From: Setoptus koraiensis
Lineage: Eukaryota; Animalia; Arthropoda
DNA length: 64,000 nt
Reading direction: 5' to 3'
Assembly (NCBI GenBank): GCA_048013815.1
Contig: CM106586.1
Span: forward strand, 19,034,001-19,098,000
Part shown: positions 5,451 to 37,447 of the stretch, piece by piece
Layout of the letters: each line of letters begins with the position of its first letter
Numbering within the stretch: position 1 is the stretch's first letter
Position numbers and translations under genes: made by a program
Notes under the pieces: generated by a model
What the model was told of the DNA's origin: nothing
What the model saw: the letters and a program-made list of their open reading frames with translations, nothing else
Databases searched by the model: none

Positions 5451-5682
5451 TGATAGCGATGCAAACAATGATGGTAAACAAACGTAGAATAAAGACATCT
5501 CGCCGGCCTGATATAATTTATATCAAATAATATAAATGCTAGTCTGATGTAGCTAGCATCAAAATAGATTGAATTAATTAAAACAACACGATTTATTATT
5601 AGTATTATCACTGTGTTGTATCATTTTCTATAAATATCTTTATATTTTAACCAGCCACTATAATCAAGTGATCCACACAAAC

Positions 5683-6776
5683 ATGTTGGAGAATATAACT
5701 CAGCTTCCAGATGAGATATGGTTACAGGCGAGCGAGATAAAGAGCAACCCTGTGAACTGGCAGGCTTATTTCCAGTCGCAGATGATTTCGCAAGATGATT
5801 TTAATTTTATATCTTCGTTTGAACGATTAAATGGACCTCAGCTAGTCAAATTTTTAGAGGAGAATAGAACGCAATGCGGAAAGACTTTTATATTCTTCTT
5901 GGAGCGCCTCGCAACGGAGCACACCATCCAGTATGTATTGATACTCATTGATGATATGCTAAGTCGAGACAAGTCTAGAGTTGAGATCTTTCGTGACTAC
6001 TGTCAAGAGATTGGAGTCTCTGTTTGGAATCCATTTTTGATGTTAATTAACCGCACTGACGGGTTCATCATAAATATGAGCTGCCGCATAGTAGCGAAAA
6101 TCGCTTGCTGTAGTTGCCAGCTTATGGGCCAGCCGGACCTCACTGTCTATTTGTCGTGGCTCAGAGACCATTTAAGAACACCGGTAAGCTACTGATAATG
6201 TCTATGCAGAATCGCCGTGATAGGTGCGAAGTTATAATTGATGGCATTCTAACTTTCATTAATGATATGTTTTTTCTCTGTATCAGAATGGCCAATACTT
6301 GCAATCGGTTGCCAGATGCTTGCAAATGATGCTTCGCATTGAAGAGTACAGGAAGGCTTTTGATGAAATCGATGGCATGGCCACTTTAGAAAGTCTCATC
6401 AGTGAGGAGAAACTGAATTTTCAAATTCAATACCAACTTATTTTCTGCTGGTGGGTCCTTACATTTAACACAGATCTGGCTAGGAAAATGAAAAAGTATA
6501 ATCTGATCCAGAATCTTGCCGATATCCTTCGTAAGGCAGTCAAAGAAAAAGTTCGACGCATCGTTTTGGCTGTCTTGAGAAATCTGATAGAGAAAGTCGA
6601 TGATCCAGACATGAGTCGAGAAAATGCCATATTGATGGTTCAATGCAAGATAATGAAACAATTGGAGATGATACAACAATCTGTCCAGAACAATGGCGAT
6701 CCAGAACTGATTGAAGATACGGAATTTCTGATAGATGCTCTGCAAACTTCAGTGCAGGACCTTAGCTCCTTCGACG
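5683..6776 (+). CDS. VhaSFD: V-type proton ATPase subunit H, 5' part (exons 5683-6183 and 6287-6776), truncated by assembly gap
   Basis: [81 protein letters not shown] are subunit-H motifs; GT-AG intron 6184-6286. Confidence 0.95.
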
Positions 6777-7276
6777 NNNNNNNNNNNNNNNNNNNNNNNN
6801 NNNNNNNNNNNNNNNNNNNNNNNNNNNNNNNNNNNNNNNNNNNNNNNNNNNNNNNNNNNNNNNNNNNNNNNNNNNNNNNNNNNNNNNNNNNNNNNNNNNN
6901 NNNNNNNNNNNNNNNNNNNNNNNNNNNNNNNNNNNNNNNNNNNNNNNNNNNNNNNNNNNNNNNNNNNNNNNNNNNNNNNNNNNNNNNNNNNNNNNNNNNN
7001 NNNNNNNNNNNNNNNNNNNNNNNNNNNNNNNNNNNNNNNNNNNNNNNNNNNNNNNNNNNNNNNNNNNNNNNNNNNNNNNNNNNNNNNNNNNNNNNNNNNN
7101 NNNNNNNNNNNNNNNNNNNNNNNNNNNNNNNNNNNNNNNNNNNNNNNNNNNNNNNNNNNNNNNNNNNNNNNNNNNNNNNNNNNNNNNNNNNNNNNNNNNN
7201 NNNNNNNNNNNNNNNNNNNNNNNNNNNNNNNNNNNNNNNNNNNNNNNNNNNNNNNNNNNNNNNNNNNNNNNNNNNN
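6777..7276. other. Assembly gap, exactly 500 N
   Basis: A round-number N run is typical of a scaffolder-inserted join; the sequences on either side are unrelated. Confidence 0.98.
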
Positions 7277-8471
7277 ATATAAATCGCATACAGCCCGATT
7301 AACTCGTTCCTCAGAGCCAATCCTTTTCCCGAAGTTACGGATCCGTTTTGCCGACTTCCCTTACCTACATTATCCTAAGTGACCAGAGGCTGTTAACCTT
7401 GGAGACCTGCTGCGGATATGGGTACGGCCAAGTGGGAAAATCAACACTATTATAAAGATTGCTCCCCATAATAGCTCCGCTTACACGATTTTTCAAGGGC
7501 CAAAGACAGCTCATGGGACAATGCTAGAACCGCATTGCTTTACGTTTACTACAACCTTATCTTCGATTGATTCGATTCCAAGGTCTCGTTGAGAAAACAC
7601 AGTAAACTTACAAAGAAAAGACAACTCTTCCCCAGGCTGCCGTCGGCGTCATCGTGCTTGTTTGCGTTACCGCCAATATTGATAGTATTCTAGTTTTTAC
7701 ACTAGCCCACTACCAATAATCTCCCCATCTTGGTTTAGGAATATTAACCTAATTCCCTTTCGAGTCATATTGTGCTTTTTATTTTTTCTTTTTTATGGAA
7801 AAATTAAAGACAATCTTTGATTCAGAAATAGCTTTCGCCATTCTCTTAGGACCGACTGACCCATGTTCAATTGCTGTTAGCATGGAACCCTTCTCCACAT
7901 TGGCCCTCAAGGGTCTCACTTGAGTATTTGCTACTACCACCAAGATCTGTACTATTGTCCGTTCCAGCCAGGCTCACGCCCTCATAGCCTTCAACACGAA
8001 CAACACAACCCTCCTACACGTTGAGATATAACTTATCGCTTTAATGGCAAATTGTTATCTCAACGGTGAAGTATAAGTTCAACACTCGAGCTGCTTCCAT
8101 TTTCAGGGCAAGTTGCTTCGGCAAGTGAGTTGTTACACACTCCTTAGATGATTCCGACTTCCATGGCCACATCCTTGCTGTCTTTAGCAACTTACACCTT
8201 TCATGGGATCTCATGAGTGTAGTATAGACAATTTGTTTATTTCTGTCTAGGTATCGGCAACTTTAACTTCACTTTCGGTTCATCCCGCATCGCCAGTTCT
8301 GCTTACCAAAAATGGCCCACTTAGTACTTAACGTATTCTAGATATTATGGCATCAGTTAAGTATGTCATATATCTCACCCATTTAAAGTTTGAGAATAGG
8401 TTGAGAACGTTTCGTTCCCAAGGCCTCTAATCATTCGCTTTACCAGATGAAACTACATAAAAACAAGTACT

Positions 8472-8522
<51 letters not shown>

Positions 8523-8670
8523 AGTCTTTCGCCCCTATACCCAGGTCTGACGATCGATTTGCACGTCAGAATCGCTACAATCCTCCACCAGAGTTTCCTC
8601 TGGCTTCAATTTGCCCAGGCATAGTTCACCATCTTTCGGGTACCAGTCAAGTATCTCTTTACTCCACCCA
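7277..8670 (-). rRNA. 28S rRNA: 28S (LSU) rRNA fragment, about D3 to D8 region, including an AU-rich D7a segment
   Basis: Reverse complement contains conserved LSU blocks acccgaaagatggtgaactatgcc, gacgtgcaaatcgatcgtc, ctaatcgaaccatctagtagctggttcc, gcagcaggtctccaagg and gtagggtaagggaagtcggcaaaacggatccgtaacttcgggaaaaggattggctctgag-like sequence. No 18S, 5.8S or ITS is present in the window. Confidence 0.95.
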
Positions 8671-14059: not shown

Positions 14060-15432
14060 TATTCGGAATCATCTTCGACGTCATCTTCATCGTCCTCGTG
14101 ATCATCGCGAGGAACGATAACCGAGAACTTGATGTTATATGCTAAACTTTTTAGGAAATCCATTGGGTCTCGATTCAATCGCTCAGCGTAAACCACTCTT
14201 ATTCTCTCTTCTATTCCGGTTCTCTTCTATTAGTATGCGAGTGAGGAACCATCGCAGGTTGCAATTTCTCTATCTAATTTGCAGTTGAACGTTGTTCATC
14301 TCTGAACATTCTTAAGCCTCTGAGGAGGCCAATATGGCTGTCACCTGCGAGCAAACCAAATCTCAAATGGCAGGCTTCTAAAGAGTTCTGGCTTCGAGGC
14401 AGATTGGCGTCCATTACGTCAGTTACGGACCACGTCCCAGACGGGAACTGAGTTGGTCGGCGACCTCTTCCAACTCTCCGACCAACGACATGATATTTGG
14501 CAAACCAAGCCAGAAGAGCACTGCCTCTTTGATCAAAATTCTCTTTGATCAATTCGAATGTTCGTTCGATGTCACTCGGAGGCACAAATGCGAGAGCAAT
14601 AAGTTGTCGAACTTGAATAGAAAAATGCGATTCTGGGTCTGCATATATTCTTTGCAACTCGCTGGATTGCACATGTCGGTAAACGATTTGTCCCAGATGA
14701 AAGTAGCACCCTTTGTACATTGCCAACGGAAATTTCACCCGAACAGCGTTAATCATGGCAGTTTCAAAGTCTGTTGAGATGAATCTCGGCGCCAGAACAA
14801 TACCGTATTGCTCGCATTACTCAATCAGTATATCGAACATCCTGCGATATAAACGCTCTCTCTCTCTCTCGCTAGTCATGAGAGTGTACACTAATGATAC
14901 ACACTTTCTGCCGGATTCTTCTATTCCAACCACACCACGTAAGGTATAGATTTGCCTGAATAAAACAGGACATGTTTTAAAAGTGCCATCCACCACGATC
15001 GTTGGTGAAGCACAGAGTTTCGACACCGAACTGAGCGATGAAAATATCAAAATTGTGTCACCTTCATGTTCTTCATGAGCCAATAAGAACGAATCACCAG
15101 AGACCGTCTTCGGATCCGTCTATCGAGATACTGTACTGTCGAGATTTCGTACGTCGAGATTCCGACCCAGACCCGAATCGAGTTTATTGTTCTGCAAGTA
15201 CTACCGTTGATCATAATAGTTCAGTTAGCCAATGGCATCTCCTTACGGGTTTCAGTCTATCACAGTCCGCGTTTTTTCTTATCAATCTCAATTGTTCCGC
15301 TCTAATATAATGCACTTCCTTTTTGACTTCAACGTCCAAAACCTGAAGGCTATATTGTGAGTGCTCATCTGAATCGCACGATAGCGTAGGTGAGTGTTGG
15401 TGGACGCGTGCGGTGGGTGCCATACGGTGCAT
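14060..15432 (-). mobile_element. Mutator-like (MULE) transposase, disrupted
   Basis: VVDGTFKTCPVLFRQIYT (first Asp), ISTDFETAMINAV (second Asp), KGCYFHLGQ (CxxH), FPSGTWSV, RSQNSLEACH (Glu). In-frame TAA at 14817-14819, TAG at 14274 and further lesions at both ends. Confidence 0.9.
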
Positions 15433-16609: not shown

Positions 16610-17399
16610 ACATAGAGCAGAGTGTATGCAAAGTTAGGCTGGTTCTTCCAATATTTCAAACGAGTAACCTTCCTGTGTCTAGGTGCTCATATGACCAATG
16701 ACAAGGGAAGACAGATGGGAAATTTCGGTGATGGCAAAACTCTGGAACTTTGTATACGGGCCAGACCCATCTAGATGAGTCTTTTGAGTCCTATTCGTTT
16801 CCACCGAAAAAATCGAATTTCGACCTTTCCTGTGTCAAAAAACAAAATATAGGGTGTATTTTCATGAATTTACCCGCAATACATTTTTCGCGAATTTTCG
16901 ACAGGTAGAAAGGTGTCTTCCCTACGGGGAGCAACCACCCCTCTTAGATCCGGGTCTTCCTCCTGGCCAGCCATGATCAGTGCTTCTTGCAAGAAAAAAC
17001 AGAAAAATCTGACGCTTGGGTCTCATAAAGACCGAATCTGACGATCTTTGAGTAGTTTTAAACGACGATTTTGTTCTCTCCACAATCTGTATCAACAACA
17101 CATGCGACCGATGACGGCAATTGTCGGCGCCGCTCTCACAAGGTAAACCCTTGTATGGGATACAAGAGATTGTCAGTGACGGACCAATCGCAATCATCTG
17201 ATATAGATTAGTGCTATGACTCCGGCTATCCGATAGTTGATTTTACAACTTTGTTAGTTACCGATATCAGGAGTCAGCCGAAATCGATTGATGTTGTCGG
17301 TTCTCTGAAGATCATTTTCATTGTGTTCCTTCCGTTTGCGACAATATTTCATTGTTGATTCAATTATAGTCAATTGATTGGTGCAGCTTGTTTGCGGAT

Positions 17400-17846
17400 G
17401 CTCGGCAACAGACGTAATATATATATATATATATGCCTCACAACTAATTATTTGGCTTCGATGTCGGTGTTGGTGACCTAGTGACAGGCCACAATTGCCG
17501 TAACAGTGATAGCACAAAGGCTCGTCGTTGTTGTCATGGTCAGCGTTTAATTTTTGTGCCAATTCTGGTTTCGCTTCTAACAAAATGAAATGTCATCGTA
17601 GCGTAGCAGCAGTAGCATTGTAAAAGAGACTAAACATTGTTATTTTTTAATATGGTTTCTTCGGTGTCTAACGATACCGCTAACGGTCTTACAACGCGCA
17701 TGCCGCCACTAATGAGCCACGCACACTATCACAAGCGAGTAACGGTAATAAATCAAAGTATACAAGTTGTCCTGACAATTGTGAGTAATCAATTTATTGC
17801 TCGCATTTGATGTACGTGGTCAGTACAATGGACAGTCTGTGTGCAA
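17400..17846 (-). repeat. Inverted repeat copy 1 (447 bp), near-identical to 22045-22493
   Basis: Reverse complement of 17400-17846 matches 22045-22493. Differences seen: ggtcacc/ggtcgcc and a 2-nt indel at the internal (TA)n tract. Both copies give the same spurious ORF (MLEAKPELAQK...). Confidence 0.95.
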
Positions 17847-18327: not shown

Positions 18328-20136
18328 TTAATGCCCATTGATCGATTTGAATGTTTGTGTCAATTCTGACGTGGTTGAGTCAACAAAATGGAGAAACTTG
18401 ATGTAATCCCTCAGAAGCACATAGTCAACTAAAATTCGATTGTAATCGTGCCTCAAAAACTTCAGTCTAGAGTCCATGACGCTTCTTGGGAGATGGTTTG
18501 GCTTGTGATTGATGTGATCTACCTGAGATGTGATGGTATCATCTGATCTGCGCATTATATTTAGGCGCCAATCATCGTCATAGGTGCTGGTGTTATTTGT
18601 TGAGTTGACATCCACACTCATTGTTTGTTTTCTGTGTGTGAGCATTCTGAAATGTTGATTGTAATGCATTCTATTCAATTCGGCAGCCTTGCCAATCAAG
18701 CACAACAAATCTATGACTGTGTCCTCGACTTGGAACAAAGCCCTGAGATTCGCATCTTTACTAACAATTTGACTCTGTATCGTAGCCTCAAAGCCCATTG
18801 CAAAGTATTGCAGATACTCGAGGGTGACATTAATCTTTTCGCGCGTCTATATTTACATTTGCAAGCATGATGATAAAGAACAAAATTGTAAGTATACTGG
18901 TTTTGATAGACATGGGCAAACGACGGTTGTTCAAGGATGGATACTTACAGTGTTGTAGGCGTGCACTGAGCCATTGTTTAACATATCAACTTCTGGCATC
19001 CAAACTTGTCGATAGGCTTGTGTCTTATTTATAAATAAGTCCCTATCAGAGACTTTGCTGAGCTGTTTAATTGGTAAATTGGTTGATAGAGACACAGATG
19101 TTAGCGATTCAATATATGGATCACATGCAACAGTTTCTAGTCAATCATTGTTGAAGCTACTTACTAATCTATCGAGCGCAATCATTGAGAGATTTCTTGT
19201 CTGTCCCAATTTTTCAGATAGACTGTCCAAAGCCAACTTGAGCCGGTCCCTGATCAAGGCCAATTCCTCAGGGCTGACAGGACTGGTGGCCGATGAACTT
19301 TTACCTGCCCCCAGTCCCTTGCTCTCAGGCTCCTCAGATTGGTGTAGATATTTGATTTTGCGTGATTTCTTTACATTACCATTGGAGCCTCTGTTTTTGG
19401 CCACTCCCAAAAGCGACTCACTATGATAATTGGCGCCACGATCATACTTGTCCAACTTTGTCTTCTTATGGTGCTGTTTGCCTATAGATCTTGCCGGCCT
19501 CGTTTGTGTCACCACAGCTTCGAGCGTTCTATTCGGGGCTCCGATATTGCCACTTGAGTTGTTCAGTTCGACGCCCAAAACATTCGAATGTTCGCAAGGC
19601 TGGGCCCACCTTGGTGGTGGAATTTTTCTAATAGGATTTTTGAGATATCTGTAATAATCAAACTCTAGTCTTAGATGTGCAGGCCAATCCTCAAACGGAT
19701 CCTCTAAGACCCTAACTCTTTCCTCGTAAGATGTGTTGGCCAATATTGTTTTGTCGTCGAACAATAATGATATATCGTCTGTTGAATTGTAATCACTGTT
19801 ATTGTTGTTGTCCATCCTAATCACAAGATAATCTTGAGGTCGGTGCTGATTTCTTCTTTTAGACTTGTTTTTACAATAGAATATTTTTTCACGACTGAAA
19901 TGTGGGACTGTTCCCTTCGGTATGGGCACCATCAGCTCATACGAAGGGTATCCTGGCTCGAAAATGCCTAGTGGTCTACCTGGTGTGTAATTCATTCTGG
20001 GAATGATTGTTGTTGCTGTTGTTGTTGTCTCAGTGCCGATATCTGCGGATGTGGGTGCCTGATCATTGGCTTGCGTCGGAACAATTAGGCCAATTGAACC
20101 GATTGTGAGCAGTAAAATTGTTTGGTATCGCACCAT
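18328..20136 (-). CDS. Secreted protein, ~534 aa, with a C-terminal putative long-chain four-helix cytokine domain (IL-6/Unpaired-like); exons 20136-19165, 19062-18949, 18846-18328
   Basis: Signal peptide MVRYQTILLLTIGSIGLIVPTQA. Two 102-nt phase-0 introns with GTAAGT donors and CAG/TAG acceptors join three frames seamlessly (...IALDRL/LSKVSDRD...WMPEV...AYNT/TREKINVTLEYLQYFAMGFEATI...VIDLLCLI...DYVLLRDYIKFLHFV...). Gene structure is well supported; the cytokine assignment is motif recall. Confidence 0.75.
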
Positions 20137-21434
20137 TGTTCGCTGTTTGTTCGTGGTTGCTGAGCGCTCTTATTGTTGATTGAAAAAGACTAAAAATTTT
20201 GCGTTCTTTATTGTTTTAGATGAGAATGGATGAGTATTAACAAGATGACGAGTAGGATTCGAATTGATTCGTTGAAGATTTAGATTGTGATTTCGAGCAA
20301 GTTGCCAGTTTACCTCTCTGAAGTCAACTGATTCTCTCTGCCTCATCAACATCGCTATTTATACTAATTTTTGTCTCACATGCAGACTTGCTAATTAATT
20401 AGTCAAGTCTAGACAGACTTTACAAATCACTCGCGCTGACTTTATTACCTTGATTCATCTGCCCGGGCCCCAATTTGTGCGCAAATCATCAACGCAATCA
20501 CTCGTCTGGAGTATACCACTTTTGCCTCTATAATTTGTTAGTGGCAGTGTCTCGGTATTTGTTTGTGTCTTGACAACCTGATTGCGCCTGACCATGATGA
20601 CAAAAGTGAAAGTTGGCCCGCTGGCGGCACCCAAACATCAAGAGCAACCAATCAAGTGGAGTCACCTTGGCCTGTATGTAAAATAAGGCATACATTTACC
20701 TGAGCGAGACCCTGGCAAGTTCTTGCTTATGCGATGTGTTGATCTGTTTCACATTGTTAACAACAGTTATTGAGATGTGTTTTGTTAAAGCGCTTAACAA
20801 TGTTATTGCATATTCAACAACAACATTTACAGCACAACATGATGCCGTCGTAGCGATTGATTTAACCCCAAAGTTATGCAACCTGATGCCAATGACACTT
20901 CGAATAAACACAACACTACACTACTTGAGATGCACATGTATTCCTCATTGGTTGTTGGCCCCATGCAGGCACCCCAGCAACGCAACGGGGGGTGACCACT
21001 GTCATCCGTTGGCTCGTCTTACAGTCTGCCCGACTATCCCAACTATCTATTTATCTGAAAGGCCCGGGCATTCTGTCTGGCATTGTCTCTTGACAACAGT
21101 GCACAAACAAACTTTGTCTCGAATGCGATCAATCCAATACCTCAACGCTGTCAAAATGGCTGCTCAAGGGCACGCCGGACAAATTCGTCGTATCAAGTCG
21201 TCTGCCTTGTTGTCCGTATCCACCACCAATTAATGATTTATCTCCTCTAATTCTCACAATACAAAATATTGCAAAAACAATTCGCTGGCAATATAATATT
21301 CTGCCTCAAGGTAGATTCAAGGTACGTGTCTGGGCATCAATTTGCCAATATGTCATCACACATAAATTATGTCTACTTACCCGAATATGCGCGCCTATGT
21401 CTGCGATAGTGAATATTCGACTTGATCCGATCAA

Positions 21435-21800
21435 TCAGTCAACCTTGGCTCGACCAAACAAAAAGCCAAAACTTGTCTTGTCGTTCTGATGCTCAATCAA
21501 AATCAATCTATGCTCCGTCGACATGACAATCGCTTGTTCCTTTGTCTGGCTTGATGAAATATTTTGTGGCAGTAAGTTGCATGAATAATTTCGTATGAAT
21601 AATTTTTCTGGATTCGGTAGGAACTTGTGATGCTGTCGGGACACTCTGCTTGACAATGGACCAACAAATGGCCTTGAACATTTCGCGAGACTTGTGGCTC
21701 GAATGTGAAATTCAAATTCAAAATCAAATCACTTGATTGAAGATTGTCATTTGAATAAGTCTGTAGAGTTCGAATTAAACAAGGCTTATCAGTGAGCGCT
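21435..21800 (-). pseudogene. Possible frameshifted dual-specificity phosphatase relic
   Basis: SNDNLQSSDLILNL...QGHLLVHCQA then, in a shifted frame, VSR. This approximates the DSP acid loop plus VHCxAGxSRS P-loop. Confidence 0.35.
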
Positions 21801-22044
21801 AAAAAACGCAGTGTCGTGTTCCGGCAATAAGCAAGATAGGCCATAAACAGATAGGACAGATATACAGACAGATGCCAATGGTTGCTCATTAGCAACCAAT
21901 AAACAAACATGCTCTGAATCGACCATTCATTTACCCAATCAACTCATTATATTAATCAGCAATGAATGTGAAACTAACATTGCCTGGCCACTCATTTGGC
22001 TATCTGACTTACAATGCGAATGGATTCAGTGCCAGAGACAAAGT

Positions 22045-23959: not shown

Positions 23960-24780
23960 TGATCAATTAATCGGCAATCAATAATAATAGCAGCTAACCC
24001 ATATCACCTAGTTGACCTCAGGCTCGAACATCTGAAAAGATACATATTTCCTTACTATAATCTAAATCAAAATCGAATTGTTCTGCTGTACGCGGGCAAT
24101 ATTCTTCAGACCCAATAGTGATTCGAGTCAATCGTAAACCATCTGGAAGTGTGTGCTCTTCTTTTATCTGGCCTATCGAACCAACTATCGGCTCCCCAAC
24201 TAGCCATATAGGCTATGTCTCCTCCTAGCAGAACGTTTCCCCTATTCAATTTTGGATATAACAAACAAATAGGTCTAACAGTATCTGACCATATCCATGG
24301 TCGTTCCATTTGCATTAGTGTCGAATCAGTGTATGGATGTAACTGCATTTTATAGACTTTTCCGAATTGGGCATTATAAAATGGTCCATCAAATGGATCG
24401 TCTGTGCCAACCACGATTTTAACTTTGAAGTCTGTGTAATTTTCCATCCAATGGCCGCGCTCTCTAGACGTTAATACGTATTCCTCGTTTATCATTACGC
24501 CAGAACATGATATGTGTCCTACTGACTCACCTTCGTAGGAAGAAGTTATAGCTATCACAAAAGGAAAATCTTTCACTAGTCAGCCACCATCCATTCTTAC
24601 TTCACTTCCTGTGTCTTGTACAGGTGAATAGGTCACATCTGCTCTTGCACCACATTCAATCGGGACATTAACACTACCCTCCTTCCAGCGCGCTTTCAAG
24701 CCATTCTTCGGTGGTCTCGATTTTTTTCCTCTTTCAGCATCAACCAGCAACATTTTTTGTGGAAATTTCAGAATGACCAA
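23960..24780 (-). pseudogene. Trypsin-family serine protease (homologue) pseudogene
   Basis: VRMDGG*LVKDFPFVIAI (IVGG-like activation motif, in-frame TGA 24580-24582), SCSGVMINEEYVLTS, VRPICLLYP, MASWG. A frameshift near 24160-24200 leads into LPDGLRLTRITIGSEEYC...EICIF...A*GQLGDMG* (GDSG equivalent) with further stops. Confidence 0.75.
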
Positions 24781-27625: not shown

Positions 27626-28597
27626 ATGTCTTCCTCCATTTACGACTCCATGTTGTCTGTTTTGAATTATATTGTCGATCAACCTGTCTTTTATTTTGTA
27701 CTGGCGGTACTTATTGTAGCATGTTTTAAAGGATGCCTAGTTAGAATACCCTATGCCACTATACTATCGACGTTGATATCGTCATGTGGCTTAATAATTG
27801 GATTAGCTGCACTTTATGATACAACTACAATAGTAGACCGGATGACACAAGAGTTATTCAAGAGGAAGCTAATCTTGTAAGTTGTAACTTGTAAGTTTAC
27901 ATCTTCTATCAGTATTTAGTTACTTACAAATAGACTTCTTTTTCTCCCTTTCATTAGATTGGACGATTTGAAGCTCGGCTACGTCTTTGTGGCAATATTC
28001 ATTGTCATCGTAATATTCTTCAATCTAATCATAGGATTTATAGCCACTGATCAATCATTATCAAATAGTGTGTCGGGTCATAGAAGGAAATGTAGCACTA
28101 CCACGTGTGTAAAGAGTTCGACAACAGTATGCCTCTTGCAAACATTCTTAGTATTCAACTATTTAATCTATTATATTTTATTGGTCGCCACTATTTTTAC
28201 TTTTGTTATGCTATTTATATGTTATGTATTATCAGCGTTATGCAATGAAAGTGCATCAATTTCAGGAGATACTAGACAACCAACACCAAATCTACCAACT
28301 GAGAGTAGACTAAGGATTGACTTACAACTATTCGGGCCCGTTATAAATTTCCCATCTAATGAAACAGGACTTTTAGATTTCAAGGATGTAAGACTACATA
28401 AATTATGTGTAGACTATATGAGTGGCCTAATGTTCCACTCCATACTATGCGCTATTGGTTTCCTATTGTCTTGTGTTGGATTTGTCAATTATCTAATCAA
28501 CTTCAGCGTGAATGCAGCCAAGTTAAGCACTAAACAAAAATTTGAAGAACTTGTTTACTTAAAATCTGAATTGGTGACCCTTGATCCAAGATACTAA
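27626..28597 (+). CDS. M6: Myelin proteolipid protein / neuronal membrane glycoprotein M6 family; exons 27626-27876, 27958-28597
   Basis: GCLVRIPYATILSTL, RMTQELFKRKLILLDDL, four hydrophobic segments and C-terminal NYLINFSVNAAKL...QKFEEL match the M6/PLP pattern; phase-2 GT-AG intron. Confidence 0.85.
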
Positions 28598-29360
28598 TTA
28601 ATCAAATTCCAGAAGGGGTCTATAGATCGCGGAATGTATAAAATTATTATCACTCTATAACTGTTGGAGCAACACTATTAATGTCAACAGCATCTGATCT
28701 CTTTTCCAAGATTCTTTTGACTGTAAATTGAAACTGTAAATTAAAACAGTTGTCTTATATGCCACTCAGAAGGAATCTAGTTAACATCGTCATCCGAAAT
28801 GAGAAGATTCTTCATGATCATGCCTCATTAGTGTGACAATACCTGAGTTTGTTCTTGTCGATTGATGAAGAGTATATTACTTTTTGGGGTATTATTACAG
28901 AGTATTAATACCACAGGGAAAATGTATTTTGGAGCAAAATATTCCACCATTTTGGAAGCGCGATCTCTCGTTTGGGTGCAATGGTTTTGTTTACTCAATT
29001 CTTCCATGTTTTTATTATGTTTCCCGAATCCAGCCTGCTTCAGACTTGAACTAGAGACCGTGTATTATCAAACATGGCACATACACTGTGACTCTTTTCT
29101 ATCTATTCAATTGTAGTCAGTATTTTGAGGGAATGCACACGGCACATAACAAGTCCTTTTCCAACCGATCTGTCGGCATGCCTGGATTCTCTCACAGATT
29201 ATCGCATTGTTATCACATGGCCAGTGCTTAAATTTTTATCTCAGTTGACCATATGGAAAGGGTCTCGTAGTGCCAATCATCGATTACTTTATCACCTTAC
29301 TTCACTACTCTCTTTATCAACTCTTTATCGGCTCAACAACTACCAAGCAGGCAGGTTGAC

Positions 29361-30116
29361 ATGCAGAAATTCGTTCAATGCATCTTCAGTCGGAAATACT
29401 TATTGGCCACCAATGCAATCCTAGGGACATCATTCATGCTAGCTGGCGATGTAATAGCTCAAGAGATTGACATTAATGGCCTTGTAAAATCAACGACGGG
29501 CCACGAGGAACATAGTGATGGTAGCGAACTGACAAAACCTACAAATACGTCCAATCAAAGACTGAAACTTGACCCTGAACAATCCAAAGCGATGGCTGCA
29601 GGCGGACTGTATTTTGGTGTAGCATGTCACTATTGGTACTTATTCCTTGATAGAAAATTTAAAGATAGAAAGCACTCTGTTTTAAAGAAACTATTGTGTG
29701 AGTCTGCAGTAGGACTCCCATTTGCTGCCGGTCTATTTGTTGTCACGGGTTCAATCAAGAAACAGTCCACGATTGCCATAGCAAACGATTTCAGGAATAG
29801 CATCTGGTATATAGTGGCTGTAAGTTGACCTAGATACACATTCAAACCAGCGTAGTTACCTTTACCACTTGACGTGCCTCTTTCTCTTTTCCTCTGTAAA
29901 TGATTGATTGTATTATTTGGATTATCCTCACGACCCACTCTCCCTCTCTCTCTCTAGGCGGATTTCCTATTTTTTTTGCCTCTCCAATCAATCAATTTCT
30001 ACTTCCTGCCCACAAGGTACAGATTCCTCTATGTTGGATGTATTACTTTAGTCTATGATGTATTTCTGTCCCACGTGATAAACAATTTGAACAGGGTGAC
30101 CAAGCCATTAGATTAG
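29361..30116 (+). CDS. Mpv17/PMP22 family protein (MPV17L2-like); exons 29361-29819, 29958-30116
   Basis: KYLLATN...LAGDVIAQ, CHYWYLFLDRKF, VLKKLLCE; second exon ADFLFFLPLQSINFYFLPTRYRFLYVGCITLVYDVFLSHV. Confidence 0.88.
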
Positions 30117-30665
30117 AAATCATTCAAATGTAATTTAGTGAGATGTGTTTGGGGCTAATCTGATGATAGAATATCGATATAGTAGTTCTGCAAGAGGCTA
30201 GTCAGTCATAGTAACATTGTGGCTTCCACCTTAAAGATTCTCATACAAACAACATCGGTATTCTAACAAGCAAATGGCACCATCACATAATTGAGCCCTC
30301 TTACTGATCAGGCTTAGTTTTGGAGATAGAATATCGTGCATATATAGAGTCGTAAGAGATCTTAAATAAACAACTGCCAAATAAAAAGAGAGCAAGAGTT
30401 TCATCTTACATAAGAATATAGAGTGCCGCTGTGAACATCAAGAACAAAGCATATTTCTGGTGCACGTGTTTATACAAGGTAGATACAAGCATGTGATCAG
30501 ATGAGACCCTGGTGTGTGTTCATAATATTTTTATTTATTGCAAACAGCATCTATCATTAGGATTGTAATTTTTTTATTACTCAATTGATATCTATTTCCG
30601 ACGATCTCATACACACACACACAGAGTTTAATTTAAACCTCAGTTGGCAAACGAAGAATCTGAAA

Positions 30666-32879
30666 ATGGTCCACTTTAGATTGGCAGTATTCACACTCAA
30701 TCAGTGGGCACTCGATTATGAGTCCAACTATCAAAGGATTATCAAGAGCATCGAATTAGCAAAAGCCGCTGGATCATTTTACCGAGTTGGACCAGAGCTC
30801 GAGATTTGTGGCTACTCATGTGAGGACTCATTCTTCGAGAGAGATCACCAAGATCATTGCTGGCAGATCATAAGCAGAATCATTAATGATAAGGTATCAG
30901 CCGACATCTTAATTGATGTTGGCATGCCCGTAACACTAAACTCGGCTCGTTACAATTGCAGATTGATCATATATAATGGACACATCTTATTGATCAGGCC
31001 AAAAACTCGTCTCGCCATCAATGGAAATTACCGTGAATCGCGTCACTTCACAGCCTGGGACCATCGGTCTGGTATGACCTGGTTCAAACTACCCCCGATC
31101 GTGACTGAGCTTCATGGGCAAAAATGGGCTCCGTTTGGATCAGGCGCTATCTTGGAATTTCCAATTTTTCAACAAGATCGACCATCCTCCCCAGGAACTT
31201 TTCGCGTTGGACATGAGATTTGCCAAGAGATGTGGGACTCAGACTCGTTGAATGAAGAATTCTATTCCAAATACGGCTGTCATCTCATAGTAAATAGTTC
31301 AGCCTCATATTGGGAACTGAGGAAACTCGATACTGTGCAGAGCATCATGAAGGCAGCCACTCTGAGATCAGGGGGCGTTTATGCTTTCTCAAATCTGCTC
31401 GGATGTGATGGTCAAAGGATTTGCTTTTACGGACGTAGCTGCATCTTCGTCAACGGACAGCTCACTAAAATGACAAACTTAAACGGCAATGTTCTAAATG
31501 AGGTTGATATGATAACTCACGACATTGATAATTACGTAGTGGAAGATTACAGATCTCAGTATTCTGTCAGGATCGACAGCAATAAAACTGCTGGCTCTAC
31601 TCTCGATCTCATGGATTGTGTCGTGTACGACCAAAAAAAGAGTTTGATCGACATTGTAAATACGAAAGTCTTGCACTTGAATGTGAATCTGAAATCTCGA
31701 GATCCCTATTCTTCTTTCAAAGATCCTTTAATACAACAAGGTGTACTGAGATTCGAAGAGGAAATTTACCTATATGCTTCATTATGGATGTGGGATTACT
31801 TACGCAGGAGTCGAATGAAAGGATTCGTCATACCGTTGAGTGGAGGACTGGACTCTAGCTCGGTGGCTTGTTTAGTTTATAGCATGTGTGTCATGATATA
31901 TGATCAAATGAAAAAAGGTAGCGATCTTGTTTGTGAATACTTCCGCCGAGTGCACAACATGAAAGAAGAAGAATTACTAAGCAAGTTCAAAACACCTTCA
32001 GACATTTGCAAAACTATATTGAGCTGTTACTATTTAGCCACAAAATTCTCAGGTGCTGCAACACTAAGGCGAGCTGAAAAATTATGTAGCTCTATAGGAT
32101 GTCATTTCCATTATTTAAACTTTGATGAAACATTCACTAACATGAAGGCATCATTGGACGCAACAATCTCCCCAAAGCCAAGCGCCGAGGCTCTCAAATT
32201 GCTAGATCAAAACCTTCAAGCCCGTCTAAGAATGACCTCCATCTACTATCTCAGCGGTGGCAATAGAATCGTTCTAGCTACAGGAAATGTAGATGAGGCC
32301 CTCATGGGTTACTTGACTAAATACGATTGTTCTTCAGCAGATATCAATCCAATTGGAGGCATCTGCAAACGAGATCTCTGTTGTTTTATGTCTTACTGCA
32401 GCAATGTCAGATTTAAAGATAATGAACAATTTGCCAGTATAGTGCATGAAATCGTAGAAGCACCTCCTAGCGCTGAATTGACAGGAGAAGATCAACGAGA
32501 TGAAGATGAGATAGGTTTGACCTACGACGAGATAGCTGCCATGGGCAGATTGCGCAGGGGACAATATGCCTGTTGTGGTCCATATATGATGTTCAAGGTA
32601 TTGTGGCAACGCCGTAATGACGAAGATCTCAAATCTCGGATAAGAGGTTTAGGCGTGGACGCAAATCCTAAAGATATCGGTGAAAAAGTGAAACGATTTT
32701 TCAAGCGATACGCAAGAAATCGTCATAAGCAAACTGTATTGACACCGGCTCTTCATGCTGAAACCTATTCACCAGATGATAATAGATTTGATCACAGGCA
32801 ATTCCTATTTAACTCCGATTGGACTCTGCAATTTTCGTGTATTGATGAAGAAATTGATAGGATCAAGTCAATCATTTAA
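30666..32879 (+). CDS. NADSYN1: Glutamine-dependent NAD(+) synthetase, intronless, ~737 aa from ATG 30666
   Basis: Nitrilase-fold glutaminase triad contexts GPELEICGY (E), IRPKTRLA (K), EICQEMW (C); synthetase PLSGGLDSS, QNLQARLRM, GNVDE, YLTKYDCSSADINPIGGI, PPSAEL, NRHKQTVLTP, PDDNRFDHRQFL. Confidence 0.97.
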   Translation: MVHFRLAVFTLNQWALDYESNYQRIIKSIELAKAAGSFYRVGPELEICGYSCEDSFFERDHQDHCWQIISRIINDKVSADILIDVGMPVTLNSARYNCRLIIYNGHILLIRPKTRLAINGNYRESRHFTAWDHRSGMTWFKLPPIVTELHGQKWAPFGSGAILEFPIFQQDRPSSPGTFRVGHEICQEMWDSDSLNEEFYSKYGCHLIVNSSASYWELRKLDTVQSIMKAATLRSGGVYAFSNLLGCDGQRICFYGRSCIFVNGQLTKMTNLNGNVLNEVDMITHDIDNYVVEDYRSQYSVRIDSNKTAGSTLDLMDCVVYDQKKSLIDIVNTKVLHLNVNLKSRDPYSSFKDPLIQQGVLRFEEEIYLYASLWMWDYLRRSRMKGFVIPLSGGLDSSSVACLVYSMCVMIYDQMKKGSDLVCEYFRRVHNMKEEELLSKFKTPSDICKTILSCYYLATKFSGAATLRRAEKLCSSIGCHFHYLNFDETFTNMKASLDATISPKPSAEALKLLDQNLQARLRMTSIYYLSGGNRIVLATGNVDEALMGYLTKYDCSSADINPIGGICKRDLCCFMSYCSNVRFKDNEQFASIVHEIVEAPPSAELTGEDQRDEDEIGLTYDEIAAMGRLRRGQYACCGPYMMFKVLWQRRNDEDLKSRIRGLGVDANPKDIGEKVKRFFKRYARNRHKQTVLTPALHAETYSPDDNRFDHRQFLFNSDWTLQFSCIDEEIDRIKSII

Positions 32880-33205
32880 GATCAATCATATACATAAATC
32901 TCTATATATATATATATTTACACATGCAGACATGAGATGGCTGGTTATAACAATAATAGCTAGTCAAGTCATTGTCAATGACGAAGAAACAATCGAGTAG
33001 ATCGACTAGATCTTTCCTACTCAATTATCGATGTTTGTATCAATCGCTCTAGGATAGTCTTTTGCTGTAGGTGCTCATCACATGTAGATACAACAAAATT
33101 AATTGTGATCTTGATATATAGCTACTATTTTCATCAGGTTTCAGTTAGGTACAGTCTGATCTTCGTGTCTACATAAAAACTCGAGTCTTAAAAAGTCTCC
33201 ATATC

Positions 33206-33208
<3 letters not shown>

Positions 33209-33261
<53 letters not shown>
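33209..33261. repeat. (AT)n microsatellite
   Basis: Uninterrupted AT dinucleotide run of about 26 units. Confidence 0.97.
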
Positions 33262-33268
<7 letters not shown>

Positions 33269-35754
33269 TCATCATCACTAGTGATAGCTTGATATTCAAC
33301 CATCCTTTTTTATCAGTAAATAGGTATAAGTTGTTTGGATTCATCATCAACGTTTAGATTGATATCACAGTGCTAGTCAGACTACTGATTTCAGTGGCAA
33401 CTCGTCGTCGTGTAGTTATTATTATTACAATGACTCTGTTTACATTTATTTTGTGTGTCTATTGTATAAGTGGTAAACATAACATTGGACAGATACGCTG
33501 ATCACACGTCAATTTATATGGATATACTCTGCAAGAAACGCCTCGCCCTTATGGAGGTATTTATCGCTTGCGGGTTTTGGCGCTTGGATCGTTATGACTG
33601 ATGACTCTTCGACCCAATCTCTACACCTTGAACTGCATGATTCTAGAATTAGGCCCCAATAAAATCAAAAGCATCGAGTAATCATAGCAATGAAACCTCT
33701 ACTACTTGATTGGCCATGATGTCGCCCAGACCATAGCTAGGTAGGCAAACATCTAACTAGAGTTGGTGAAAGTGTTGCTGAGCCATAAATACGCCAATAA
33801 CATCGCTCAAAAGTGCGGACGCTGTAAGGAGATTGCAAGGGGATGCTACAATAAACATTAGCTACCAGTCACCTGTAAATTATGTAATGTGAGTGCAATT
33901 TGCACTATTTTGGATACTAATTGGAATAAATTTGATAGCAGTTTGCGTTTAGGGTAGAATTCGAACGAGTCAGTAGTTTTTATTTGTTTGATACTAACTG
34001 AAAATATTATTGTTCAAACAATCATTTTAACGATTTCATCTGACATGTTTGTCGTGCAACCAACGTTAAGTAAGTTCGGATCAAAAAACATTAGGCAATT
34101 TAGAGCAGTCATATCAAGCTATCGATGTTGCCATTCCATTGGCATTGATGCCATGATCAACAAAAGATGCTCTGTATATAATTAACGCTACTTTATGTAA
34201 TAGAATGAGATCATTGACAGAATTTTCGAATTGAGATTAATGAAGTTGCAAGGATCATGTACCATTGATTTATGTCGCCCCCTCTTACTAAAACAAATTC
34301 ATCATCAACTCATCAATGAGCGTGATGATCCAATTGTTGTTGTATAATGTTGTAACTGAATTACTAATACAACAACAGAGTCGGCAAAATACTGTGATTT
34401 GAAGATGAGAAAAAATTGTTTCATTATTGTTCAGTGCCTGCTCAGGCATCAGTAAGCATACAGAAAATATGTCTCGCCATTGCCCTGAAAATTGCGCGAC
34501 AACAAAACTTATCCCGCCACCATAAAAATTGCCTTTAGCTCTCTTAGATCCGTCAAGTCAATGTGGAAAAACATATTTATATATAGTCAATTGATTGAAC
34601 ATAAATTCGCGCAAAATAAACAACCCATTTGGATACAAAGTAGTCGTGTTAGATAATGTTCATGAATAAATATAGCAACACATTATCTGATGGATTGATA
34701 CCTAGGTGGTTTCCATAGATAATATTAGATGGTGTAGATAATGCGCTCAAGATGCTCATTATAAGCACAACATTGATTCAACACAAAAATAAAATTTAAT
34801 TCAAGTCCACCAATGATCCTTATTTGAGTTTCAACAACAACAATATTTGGTATTGTGCTGACCTACAGGTGAATGGGCCAGTCAACCTGTTCGGAGAAAA
34901 AACTCAAGGAAATCGCATAATAACAAGGTAGGTGCCTCTTGAAGTTGATTACTGAACTTTCTCATAAGACATCTGGACGAAAAATGAGAATTTTATCGCT
35001 CGTAAGGCAATATCTTATTGCCACATGAATCTAACGTTGTCAACAAAAGTCAACAATTATTTCAGCGCAATAAGGACCGCGATTGAATATTTTTATCGCG
35101 TCACCCGGGTTTATTTGCCAATGTTAGCAACAGGAAGACAGATCTAGTTGTTTGTCATCCGTACTATTGTTGATGTTAGATCATTTGATCTTTTCAGTAC
35201 GTTCAAGATTGATTATGTTTGAGACATGTTGTGATACTTATAATTATTATTTTGTAAAGGTGGTAGTGAAGATGTTGGCATAGCTCGACTTGTAAGCCGT
35301 GTTTGTTTGAATAACGTCATTATTAGCTAAGCCGATTATTTGTCATCAATTATTACGACGATTGAGAGTTTCAACATCACCCGCTAATTACGTTCATAGT
35401 TATCATGAAGTCTGTCTATTCGTGCAACGACCCGCTCATCAATATATGAAAAGAATATTGATTGGCGAGTAACCATGTTGAAGACGCATGATAATTGTGG
35501 TTGTAAACAACAATCAGAAGTCAGTGGTGGTATTGTTGTCAGAAACGAGATTCATTCATTGTTGGATGATAAAGTACTATTAAGTAAGAGTACACTCATA
35601 GTTTCATTAGTCACACAAATCTTCTCAAATCCCCGTCAACCGCTTGTCAATTGAAGCAAGTTGTTGTATAATATTCATCTTGACAACTAATCTGCTCTCG
35701 TCAGTCAAAATGATACATATTGTTGAGCGAAAGAAAAAAAGTGCCACTAGTTAG

Positions 35755-36080
35755 CATGGATTTTTTCCCCTTTCCTGGTCTTTCAAGTTTGTTTGTTCTG
35801 AACAAACATGATTAGCTGCGAATCTAGACCAGTCACTATGGCAAATATATTCAAGCCAGGTTCTCTCATCAAATAGTAATCGATCTGTCTTTACCATCAA
35901 CTTCTTGGTGATACGAATATTCGCCAGCCCATTAAAGCTGTCATTGTAATGTGATTCCAGCTACTCTATTGGAAGAAGTCAATCGGTCGATGTGCCAAAT
36001 GACGACATCTTCATATCATCGGTGTAAGACAAGCTGGCGTCCTTTTCCTTGAACCCTAGTCTTATAAACTACTCCATTCG
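35755..36080 (-). pseudogene. Possible relic with an SRCR-like motif
   Basis: One minus frame reads, with several stops, ...RTWLEYICHSDWSRFAANHVCSEQ, resembling the SRCR W-x-x-(V/I)C-x-x-x-W...A-x-x-VC pattern. Confidence 0.25.
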
Positions 36081-37447
36081 TGTTCGTCTCCTCGTTCGTT
36101 GCCACTGACAAACGACCGAGGCTCAATATGGCTCCAGATTGAGGACTGAAATTGAGGACACACACTCACGCTCCATTACGGGTAATGGTAAAGCAAATCG
36201 TAAAAGAAATATGACACCGAAAACAGATTTGCAGAGAATAGAGAAACTTTCAATTCTTTTTTAGGCTTTCTCTGCCGCCACGATCTCGAGATGCTGCCGC
36301 GGTGGTTCGTGACATAGGCTATATTGAGAGTAGTGATACATATGATCATCATGTTTAATACTTACTCATGACTATGTATGTAATCATGGCGGGAATAATC
36401 TTGATGATGATGTTAATCAAGAGAGACTGAAGATATCAGACTCATTATACATAAATGGCTACAAAAACCACTTGTTGTTGTTGTTGTTTAGAGTAGAAAA
36501 ACACACGACACAACCACTGCTGGCATAACTTTATCGCACTGAACTAACTTTTATTAGTTATATATCTGTGAAATAACAAGCAGCAAACAAACAAACAAAT
36601 GAAAGGGAGAAAAAAACACTACTGATTTATTTGAGCTTACATTTATTCAATTCTGTTCCAATGATATCGTGTTTAAGTGATGCATTAAGCAGTAGTAGCA
36701 AAGACGACACATGATTTAAATCTAATTATATCATTGGCGAGGTGTGTTAATAGGTTAGTTGAGCTATCCAGAACAATCGCACACTACTGTGTCATATGCT
36801 AAATTGTAAGCGCCAAGTTGACTTCGATTGTTTATTATTGTTTGTGCTTGTTCATTTGTGTTTTTTATTAATGTTATATGTTCCTGCAAATTGAGATCAA
36901 ATCATCAGTTATTAGCCAGTTGCCATAATAACAATAGTAATAGTTTTATCGAATTGAGACGTCAACTTTATCAAAAATTAGCTATTATAGTTAGTAAGTA
37001 GCTTCAACGGATGGTGTATATTGAGTGAAATTAGACAAGAGCTAAACTAATGTACTTTCTCTCTTTTGTTTTTGTTTATTTAACTGGAACATAAAACAAT
37101 CAAATCTCATGTTATTTACATATCACCATCCTCTCTGATAACAACAGCAAAGTCATCATAATTGCATTGATTTTACCACCATGGTCACTAAATGAATATA
37201 CAATTTTAAATATCCATCTACCATCCATTCAGAAATTTTTAATCTAGTGACCAGGTCTTCCGGCCCGCAATCAAGACATTTTAAAACATTTATTATTACA
37301 TGTGTACAAACAAGCAAATATAAACTAATCAATCAATAGTATTGTTTTAAATTTAGTGACCAACATCCGAAATATCACACTATACTCATACTATCATCAC
37401 ACCATACGAAATCACAAACACGCACCTAGACGAATAAACCATTCAAT

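Follow-up and report, generated by a model that had tools for sequence, protein, structure and literature searches.

A conserved three-exon gene in the mite Setoptus koraiensis and its predicted secreted, possibly cytokine-like product

Do two unrelated-looking open reading frames (ORFs) that lie close together on one strand of a mite chromosome belong to two genes or to one, and what kind of protein would they encode? The question is raised by a 64,000-nt stretch of the genome of Setoptus koraiensis (assembly GCA_048013815.1, contig CM106586.1, positions 19,034,001 to 19,098,000 of the forward strand), here called the window, within which all coordinates below are counted. The assembly comprises 47 Mb in two chromosomes, was scaffolded with 3D-DNA and was annotated without RNA (PMC11920263). 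Both ORFs are on the minus strand, at 19141-20136 (331 aa) and 18328-18798 (156 aa), with their ATG codons at 20136 and 18798, respectively. We regard the three-exon gene in which they are joined as established, short of transcript proof. For its product we favour, tentatively, the reading that the locus is a real three-exon gene for a secreted, N-glycosylated precursor of 534 residues, from which a helical-cytokine-like signalling protein would derive.

Exon structure and comparison with a sister species

The first-pass annotation, made from the sequence alone, had proposed that the two ORFs and a 114-nt middle exon are spliced through two 102-nt introns into one protein of about 534 residues. 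The coordinates of this model proved exact. Three minus-strand exons (20136-19165, 19062-18949 and 18846-18331) join in phase and yield 324 + 38 + 172 = 534 codons; both introns are 102 nt long and run from GTAAGT to AG, and every junction is in phase 0. The frame of the downstream ORF remains open upstream of its ATG as far as 18846, the first base of the modelled last exon. The final 200 nt of the leader are free of ATG, and a TATA box and an AATAAA signal flank the coding part (Table 1). The gene is present in single copy in the window, where a tblastn search with the three exons returned self matches and one chance match. That weak match (E 0.094), inspected as a possible paralogue, falls in the kinase domain of a Rho-kinase and was rejected.

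The same anatomy was found in a second genome. An exhaustive phmmer search with exon 3 against 1.84 billion representative proteins retrieved one true relative, P0001 (E 2.6e-34, 45% identity), which is encoded on L001, a 1954-bp Logan contig of a sister species (run SRR33593474) that lacks the N-terminus of the gene. On this contig, GTAAGT stands directly behind the ...DRL with which an upstream ORF closes, and then come a 98-nt intron, a 114-nt middle exon, a 111-nt intron and the last exon. In the last exon, conservation starts directly at the acceptor (TREKIN.T.EYLQYF), 5′ of the ATG chosen by the gene-caller. The splice junctions lie at the same codons in the two genes, and the middle exon measures 114 nt in both. 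All four introns (19063-19164 and 18847-18948 in the window; 928-1025 and 1140-1250 in L001) open with GTAAGT and contain no AG in the 48-72 nt that precede the acceptor, and a (TA)CTAAC branch motif stands about 40 nt upstream of the acceptor in intron 1 of both species, being a perfect TACTAAC in the relative. One further protein matched in the search, P0002 (445 aa), was discarded as a relative; it is lysine-rich with repeats of about 65 residues, and we read the match as a compositional or repeat artefact. It had matched a single stretch (exon-3 residues 113-158, in predicted helix D) five times, with an E value of 1.1e-06.

Conservation between the two genes follows the exon model closely. 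The amino-acid identities were 36% for exon 1 (L001:1-927), 32% for exon 2 and 45% for exon 3 (L001:1251-1784). When nucleotide local alignments of the window gene and L001 were scored against shuffles, high z-scores were obtained for the last 300 nt of exon 1 (29.7), exon 2 (8.0) and the first 300 nt of exon 3 (66), and low ones for intron 1 (0.4), intron 2 (2.2) and the 3′ untranslated region (0.1). For the short middle exon, the peptide score in the model frame was 60, compared with a shuffle null of 18.8 ± 4.2, and none of 2000 shuffles reached 60; its remaining frames hold stops in both species. Read-through past either donor leads to unrelated tails and stops, again in both species, and the indels that distinguish the exons keep the reading frame. 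The open frames and the frame-preserving indels show selection for a protein, whether L001 carries the orthologue or an older paralogue.

Lineage, evolutionary rate and status of the locus

The lineage of the organism was assessed with an intronless NAD synthetase gene of the window (30666-32876). Its best named matches were in acariform mites (Oppia, Oppiella, Aceria tosichella, Halotydeus, Tetranychus and Dermatophagoides), with identities of 45-49%, compared with about 40% for insects. In a maximum-likelihood tree, the window NAD synthetase paired with a 93%-identical sequence from run SRR33593474, and this pair was sister (support 100/100) to a clade in which the eriophyoid Aceria tosichella stands among many unnamed sequences, apart from other mites and from insects. 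The 93%-identical sequence comes from the same run as L001, which indicates that L001 derives from a close sister species. The best matches and the tree, which place the organism in a mite, eriophyoid lineage, also rule out a frame in which the candidate would be sought as an insect gene or an orthologue of Unpaired (Upd).

The candidate and the NAD synthetase differ greatly in evolutionary rate. Between the window and the sister species, the nonsynonymous divergence (dN) of the candidate was 0.59 and its synonymous divergence (dS) about 1.2-1.4, versus a dN of 0.036 and a dS of 0.74 for the NAD synthetase and its counterpart in the same sister-species run. The dN/dS ratio of the candidate is thus 0.4-0.5 by its own dS, and nearer 0.8 if the dS of the NAD synthetase serves as the neutral reference. 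Conservation of its coding DNA does not exceed that of the alignable intergenic DNA near the NAD synthetase (71-75% identical). These values may reflect either very fast evolution with conserved islands or a comparison with an older paralogue on L001; the higher dS of the candidate fits both. A second sister-species contig (L002:6386-13965) is colinear with window 28925-36610, covering the NAD synthetase and downstream intergenic DNA at 71-86% nucleotide identity. The colinearity begins only at about 28925, so synteny has no power to tell an orthologue from an older paralogue in the case of L001. 5′ of this point, L002 has a kinesin gene in place of the genes of the window, a rearrangement breakpoint between close species.

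Divergence near that of non-coding DNA raises the question of whether the locus is a functional gene at all, or whether the exon model is wrong and two independent ORFs or a decaying locus are being joined. A search of sequencing runs for the locus gave three matches, all of them DNA contigs that continue through the introns with no spliced joint, and there was no RNA run for either species. Word searches with exon 1 and exon 3 found no record of the spliced three-exon protein in protein collections. Both results are in keeping with a locus that is not a gene. We nevertheless consider this explanation very improbable: at a synonymous divergence above 0.7, all three pieces are open in both species, the exon-2 length and the junction codons are identical, and conservation begins and ends exactly at the splice sites. 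The frame-preserving exon indels, a dN/dS below 1 with conserved islands, and the presence of a TATA box, an ATG-free leader and AATAAA likewise speak for a working gene.

Predicted secretory precursor and its helical part

By hydropathy, residues 1-23 are the sole hydrophobic segment of the protein and form a predicted signal-peptide-like start. The protein contains fifteen N-x-S/T sequons, and the two species have sequons at equivalent positions in exon 2, at the beginning of exon 3 and within the C-D loop. These predicted features support the earlier proposal of a secreted protein.

Little of the N-terminal half appears to be folded. AlphaFold2, run on exon 1 with a two-sequence alignment, returned no confident structure for residues 1-282 and no structured pro-domain, apart from a short helix (151-163) at a conserved WP...YY..L island. 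Within the roughly 260 unstructured residues, several islands are invariant between the species, namely PRWA.PC, R213-x-x-R216 followed by SIGK, GSNG, and K.RKIKYLHQS. The first-pass annotation had described a long N-terminal pro-region with two basic clusters, KSKRR and KKSRKIK, as possible convertase sites or heparan sulfate-binding elements. KKSRKIK is conserved in the relative; KSKRR is not conserved, and neither cluster is the best convertase-type site. That place is taken by a putative cleavage site at RPAR/S (residues 213-217), which reads RKQR/S in the relative. The conserved basic block KKSRKIKYLHQS could serve in binding to heparan sulfate or matrix, or could be a patch resembling a nuclear localisation signal.

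The C-terminal part is predicted to be helical throughout, with four long helices, A to D, and one short additional helix (Table 1). Helix A, at the end of exon 1, is the sole confident part of the exon-1 model. The AlphaFold2 model of exon 3 was all-helical and of poor confidence (predicted local distance difference test score, pLDDT, 54; predicted template-modelling score 0.30). Loops of about 40, 4 and 43 residues join the predicted helices, and exon 2 makes up most of the A-B loop. Long-short-long loops are the connectivity required by up-up-down-down helical cytokines, whereas all-antiparallel bundles have three short loops; the modelled loop lengths would therefore fit an up-up-down-down topology. 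Of the earlier description of amphipathic helices, the long helices are borne out by prediction, but an amphipathic character is not demonstrated: the hydrophobic moment, calculated for the four helices in both species, was not above that of shuffled controls.

A language-model feature search of the ESM Atlas with exon 3 pointed to clusters of cardiotrophin-2-like proteins, CNTF, IL-11, IL-6/G-CSF, LIF/OSM, IL-27 alpha, IL-12 alpha and growth-hormone-type proteins. The best cluster scored 0.91 and had 208 of 256 features in common with exon 3, on a scale where 4-10 of every 100 shuffled proteins attain 0.9, and all ten best family-bearing matches shared a family or clan. With the 45%-identical relative as query, the same clusters were recovered more weakly (0.75-0.79). 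These cytokine neighbours of exon 3, together with the long-short-long helix connectivity, make a cytokine reading plausible. The very fast evolution (dN 0.59 versus 0.036) also counts for it, since such speed is typical of cytokines.

Other evidence weighs against the cytokine reading. Besides the DNA-only record of the locus, the shuffled-protein scores and the hydrophobic moments given above, the ESM Atlas "recognition" value was low, at 1703 for exon 3 and 1367 for the relative, where 91 of 100 known-family proteins reach 2300; in an embedding of this kind, secreted helical orphans that evolve fast may drift toward the cytokine clusters. No cytokine family was found when each exon of both species was run through Pfam hmmscan at E values up to 10, and no cytokine match was obtained in a profile search of the PDB or in two piecewise PDB searches. 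The exhaustive phmmer search with exon 3 returned neither a cytokine nor an Upd protein, and the word searches with exons 1 and 3 returned no relatives and no Upd. The likeness to Unpaired and IL-6 sequence motifs claimed at first sight thus found nothing to sustain it in the exhaustive exon-3 phmmer, Pfam or PDB searches. Models of the separate exons, searched against PDB representatives, the Foldseek PDB set and the ESM Atlas, gave generic helical matches only.

The shape of the separate-exon model of exon 3 leaves room for an endogenous extracellular protein of another kind, such as a matrix, seminal or egg, or prohormone-type protein, in which the C-terminal helices would form a scaffold, as a coiled coil or a bundle, with no relation to cytokine receptors. 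Instead of being compact, the model is extended, and its helices, at 35-50 residues, exceed the usual length in cytokines. The secretory features, the basic patches and the predicted heavy glycosylation would suit such a role, and quick divergence is typical of reproductive proteins too. Nevertheless, the Pfam searches gave no pointer to a specific family of that kind, the language-model neighbours were solely cytokines, and the loop pattern is poorly compatible with a simple coiled coil. On balance, we judge this explanation unlikely.

The mite lineage suggests a different alternative, namely that the protein is a lineage-specific effector of a plant-feeding mite, salivary or otherwise exported, that would be delivered to host tissue and whose basic block would serve in nuclear localisation or in host binding. 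By its NAD synthetase the organism belongs with the eriophyoid Aceria, and eriophyoids are plant parasites (PMC11920263). An effector would also accord with the signal-like start, with the orphan status of the protein (a single relative among 1.84 billion proteins in the exon-3 search), with its fast evolution (dN/dS 0.4-0.5 by its own dS, and higher with that of the NAD synthetase) and with the conservation of the basic block, which is of K-K/R-x-K/R type. An orphan of this kind could equally well be an effector, and we treat the effector reading as a serious rival, although we find it somewhat unlikely. The gene is single, with no paralogue or tandem array in the 64-kb window; the length of 534 residues, the long N-terminal part that lacks structure and the conserved RxxR are more suggestive of a processed precursor; and long-short-long helices with consistent cytokine neighbours are unexpected for a generic helical effector. 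It is the single copy, the size and layout of a processed precursor, the conserved RxxR and the cytokine-type loops that lead us to favour an endogenous signal.

Table 1. Features of the candidate gene, its predicted product and its flanks, listed 5′ to 3′ (window coordinates).
Feature	Position	Strand	Remarks
TATAAATA box (TATA box)	20356..20363	-	227 nt 5′ of start codon
Exon 1, coding part	19165..20136	-	324 codons; phase-0 end before GTAAGT
Signal-peptide-like start, residues 1-23 (predicted)	20068..20136	-	By hydropathy: basic n-region, 14-residue hydrophobic core (residues 6-19), T-Q-A before N24
R213-P-A-R216, minimal proprotein-convertase motif (RxxR)	19489..19500	-	R-K-Q-R in relative; R213, R216, S217, I218, G219 and K220 invariant
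Conserved basic block KKSRKIKYLHQS, residues 256-267	19336..19371	-	K257 and R259 to S267 invariant
Predicted helix A, residues 289-323	19168..19272	-	AlphaFold2, exon 1; 10-residue pLDDT block means 63-83
Intron 1	19063..19164	-	102 nt; donor GTAAGT from 19164, directly after codon 324; acceptor AG 19064-19063
Intron 1 branch motif CTAAC	19104-19100	-	38 nt from intron end; last 72 nt before acceptor AG-free
Exon 2	18949..19062	-	114 nt, 38 codons, no stop; W.PEVD.L.N motif and conserved N-x-T sequon
Intron 2	18847..18948	-	102 nt; donor GTAAGT from 18948; acceptor AG 18848-18847; 48 nt before acceptor AG-free
Exon 3, coding part	18328..18846	-	172 codons and stop (18330-18328); in frame with downstream ATG ORF
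Predicted helix B, exon-3 residues 2-38 (protein 364-400)	18733..18843	-	Low-confidence AlphaFold2 model
Predicted helix C, exon-3 residues 43-77 (protein 405-439)	18616..18720	-	Conserved Cys; about 4 residues after helix B
Short predicted helix in C-D loop, exon-3 residues 89-103	18538..18582	-	Overlaps conserved DDD-to-SDDTI stretch
Predicted helix D, exon-3 residues 121-170 (protein 483-532)	18337..18486	-	Holds conserved R.L.DY.L.RDY.KFL.F block
AATAAA	18131..18136	-	191 nt 3′ of stop codon

The candidate stands by itself, and the Pfam-matched ORFs nearest to it lie at 24106-24576 (-) and 27959-28597 (+). The former encodes a trypsin-like protein of 156 aa that holds the first half of the trypsin domain only (profile positions 12-128 of 220), and the latter an M6/myelin-PLP-like membrane protein. 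The ORFs at 14277-14756, 17257-17583, 20736-21230 and 21506-21910 could be assigned to no family. Farther away, a 1.28-kb fragment of eukaryotic large-subunit ribosomal RNA (7381-8663, minus strand; Rfam RF02543, 956 bits, model positions 665-1888 of 3401) closely follows a scaffold gap of 500 N (6777-7276), a size typical of 3D-DNA scaffolding, which interrupts ORFs resembling V-ATPase subunit H (5668-7282). The fragment beside the gap probably reflects a join made in scaffolding or assembly, or else the insertion of a piece of ribosomal DNA.

Possible function and comparison with known ligands

According to reviews, mites and ticks have Domeless, JAK and STAT, no Upd homologue has been found in them, and the activating ligand is described as unidentified (PMC12027997, PMC7962413; on the three components and the ligand question, see also PMC6902594). 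The first-pass annotation had taken the protein to be the organism's JAK/STAT ligand. Of this, a helical secreted protein that is cytokine-like by language-model features and predicted loops survives, and recognisable membership of the IL-6 or Upd family does not. Taken at its fullest, the proposal would make the candidate the first class-I helical cytokine that a chelicerate itself encodes and the missing Domeless/JAK-STAT ligand of mites, and perhaps, by way of structure-guided searches seeded with it, of ticks; its sequence would have diverged beyond recognition from insect Upd and vertebrate IL-6-type proteins. We hold this full proposal to be rather unlikely.

Should the favoured precursor reading be right, the protein might act as follows. 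The signal peptide would be removed after Ala23, and a furin-type convertase would cut after R216 at the conserved RxxR/SIGK. The basic block KK.RKIKYLHQS would tether the product to heparan sulfate or matrix, and the four helices would pack as an up-up-down-down bundle. This bundle would engage the gp130-like receptor Domeless and trigger JAK/STAT signalling, so that the candidate would fill the role of the Drosophila Unpaired proteins, although its sequence does not identify it as one of the Upd family.

A Domeless ligand would be of more interest from a mite than from an insect. A candidate for which the exons, a putative processing site and the bounds of the helical domain are given makes the ligand gap in Acari testable, and if the cytokine fold were confirmed, the two sequences could seed structure- or profile-based searches elsewhere in the Acari, with ticks and Varroa among the targets. 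If the protein were an effector instead, it would add to the fast-evolving proteins that plant parasites secrete, and its interest would be no more than local.

Among known systems, the Unpaired proteins of Drosophila (Upd1, Upd2 and Upd3), which are IL-6-like Domeless ligands, are one point of comparison. Like them, the candidate is predicted to be secreted and helical, evolves fast and is far longer than a bare cytokine domain. Upd1 is glycosylated and associated with matrix and heparin, which the conserved basic block of the candidate would parallel. The candidate differs from Upd1-3 in having no detectable sequence similarity to them, in coming from a mite, and in its N-terminal part of about 260 residues with conserved islands and an RxxR.

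The vertebrate cytokines of the gp130 family (IL-6, IL-11, CNTF, CT-1/CT-2, LIF/OSM and IL-27 p28) are the other. The candidate differs from them in having no Pfam, PDB or profile match, in its longer helices (35-50 residues), in its large N-terminal extension and in the one conserved Cys of its helical part. In IL-6, helix D contains the stretch L-x-L-R-x-F-x-x-F-L, which the conserved L.RDY.KFL of the candidate resembles, though without statistical support. Proteins of this family are the sole feature-space neighbours of the candidate in both species. As in these cytokines, four long helices are predicted for it, with long connections from A to B and from C to D and a short one from B to C. 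The candidate has an extra short predicted helix in the C-D loop, and IL-6 carries a mini-helix in the same loop.

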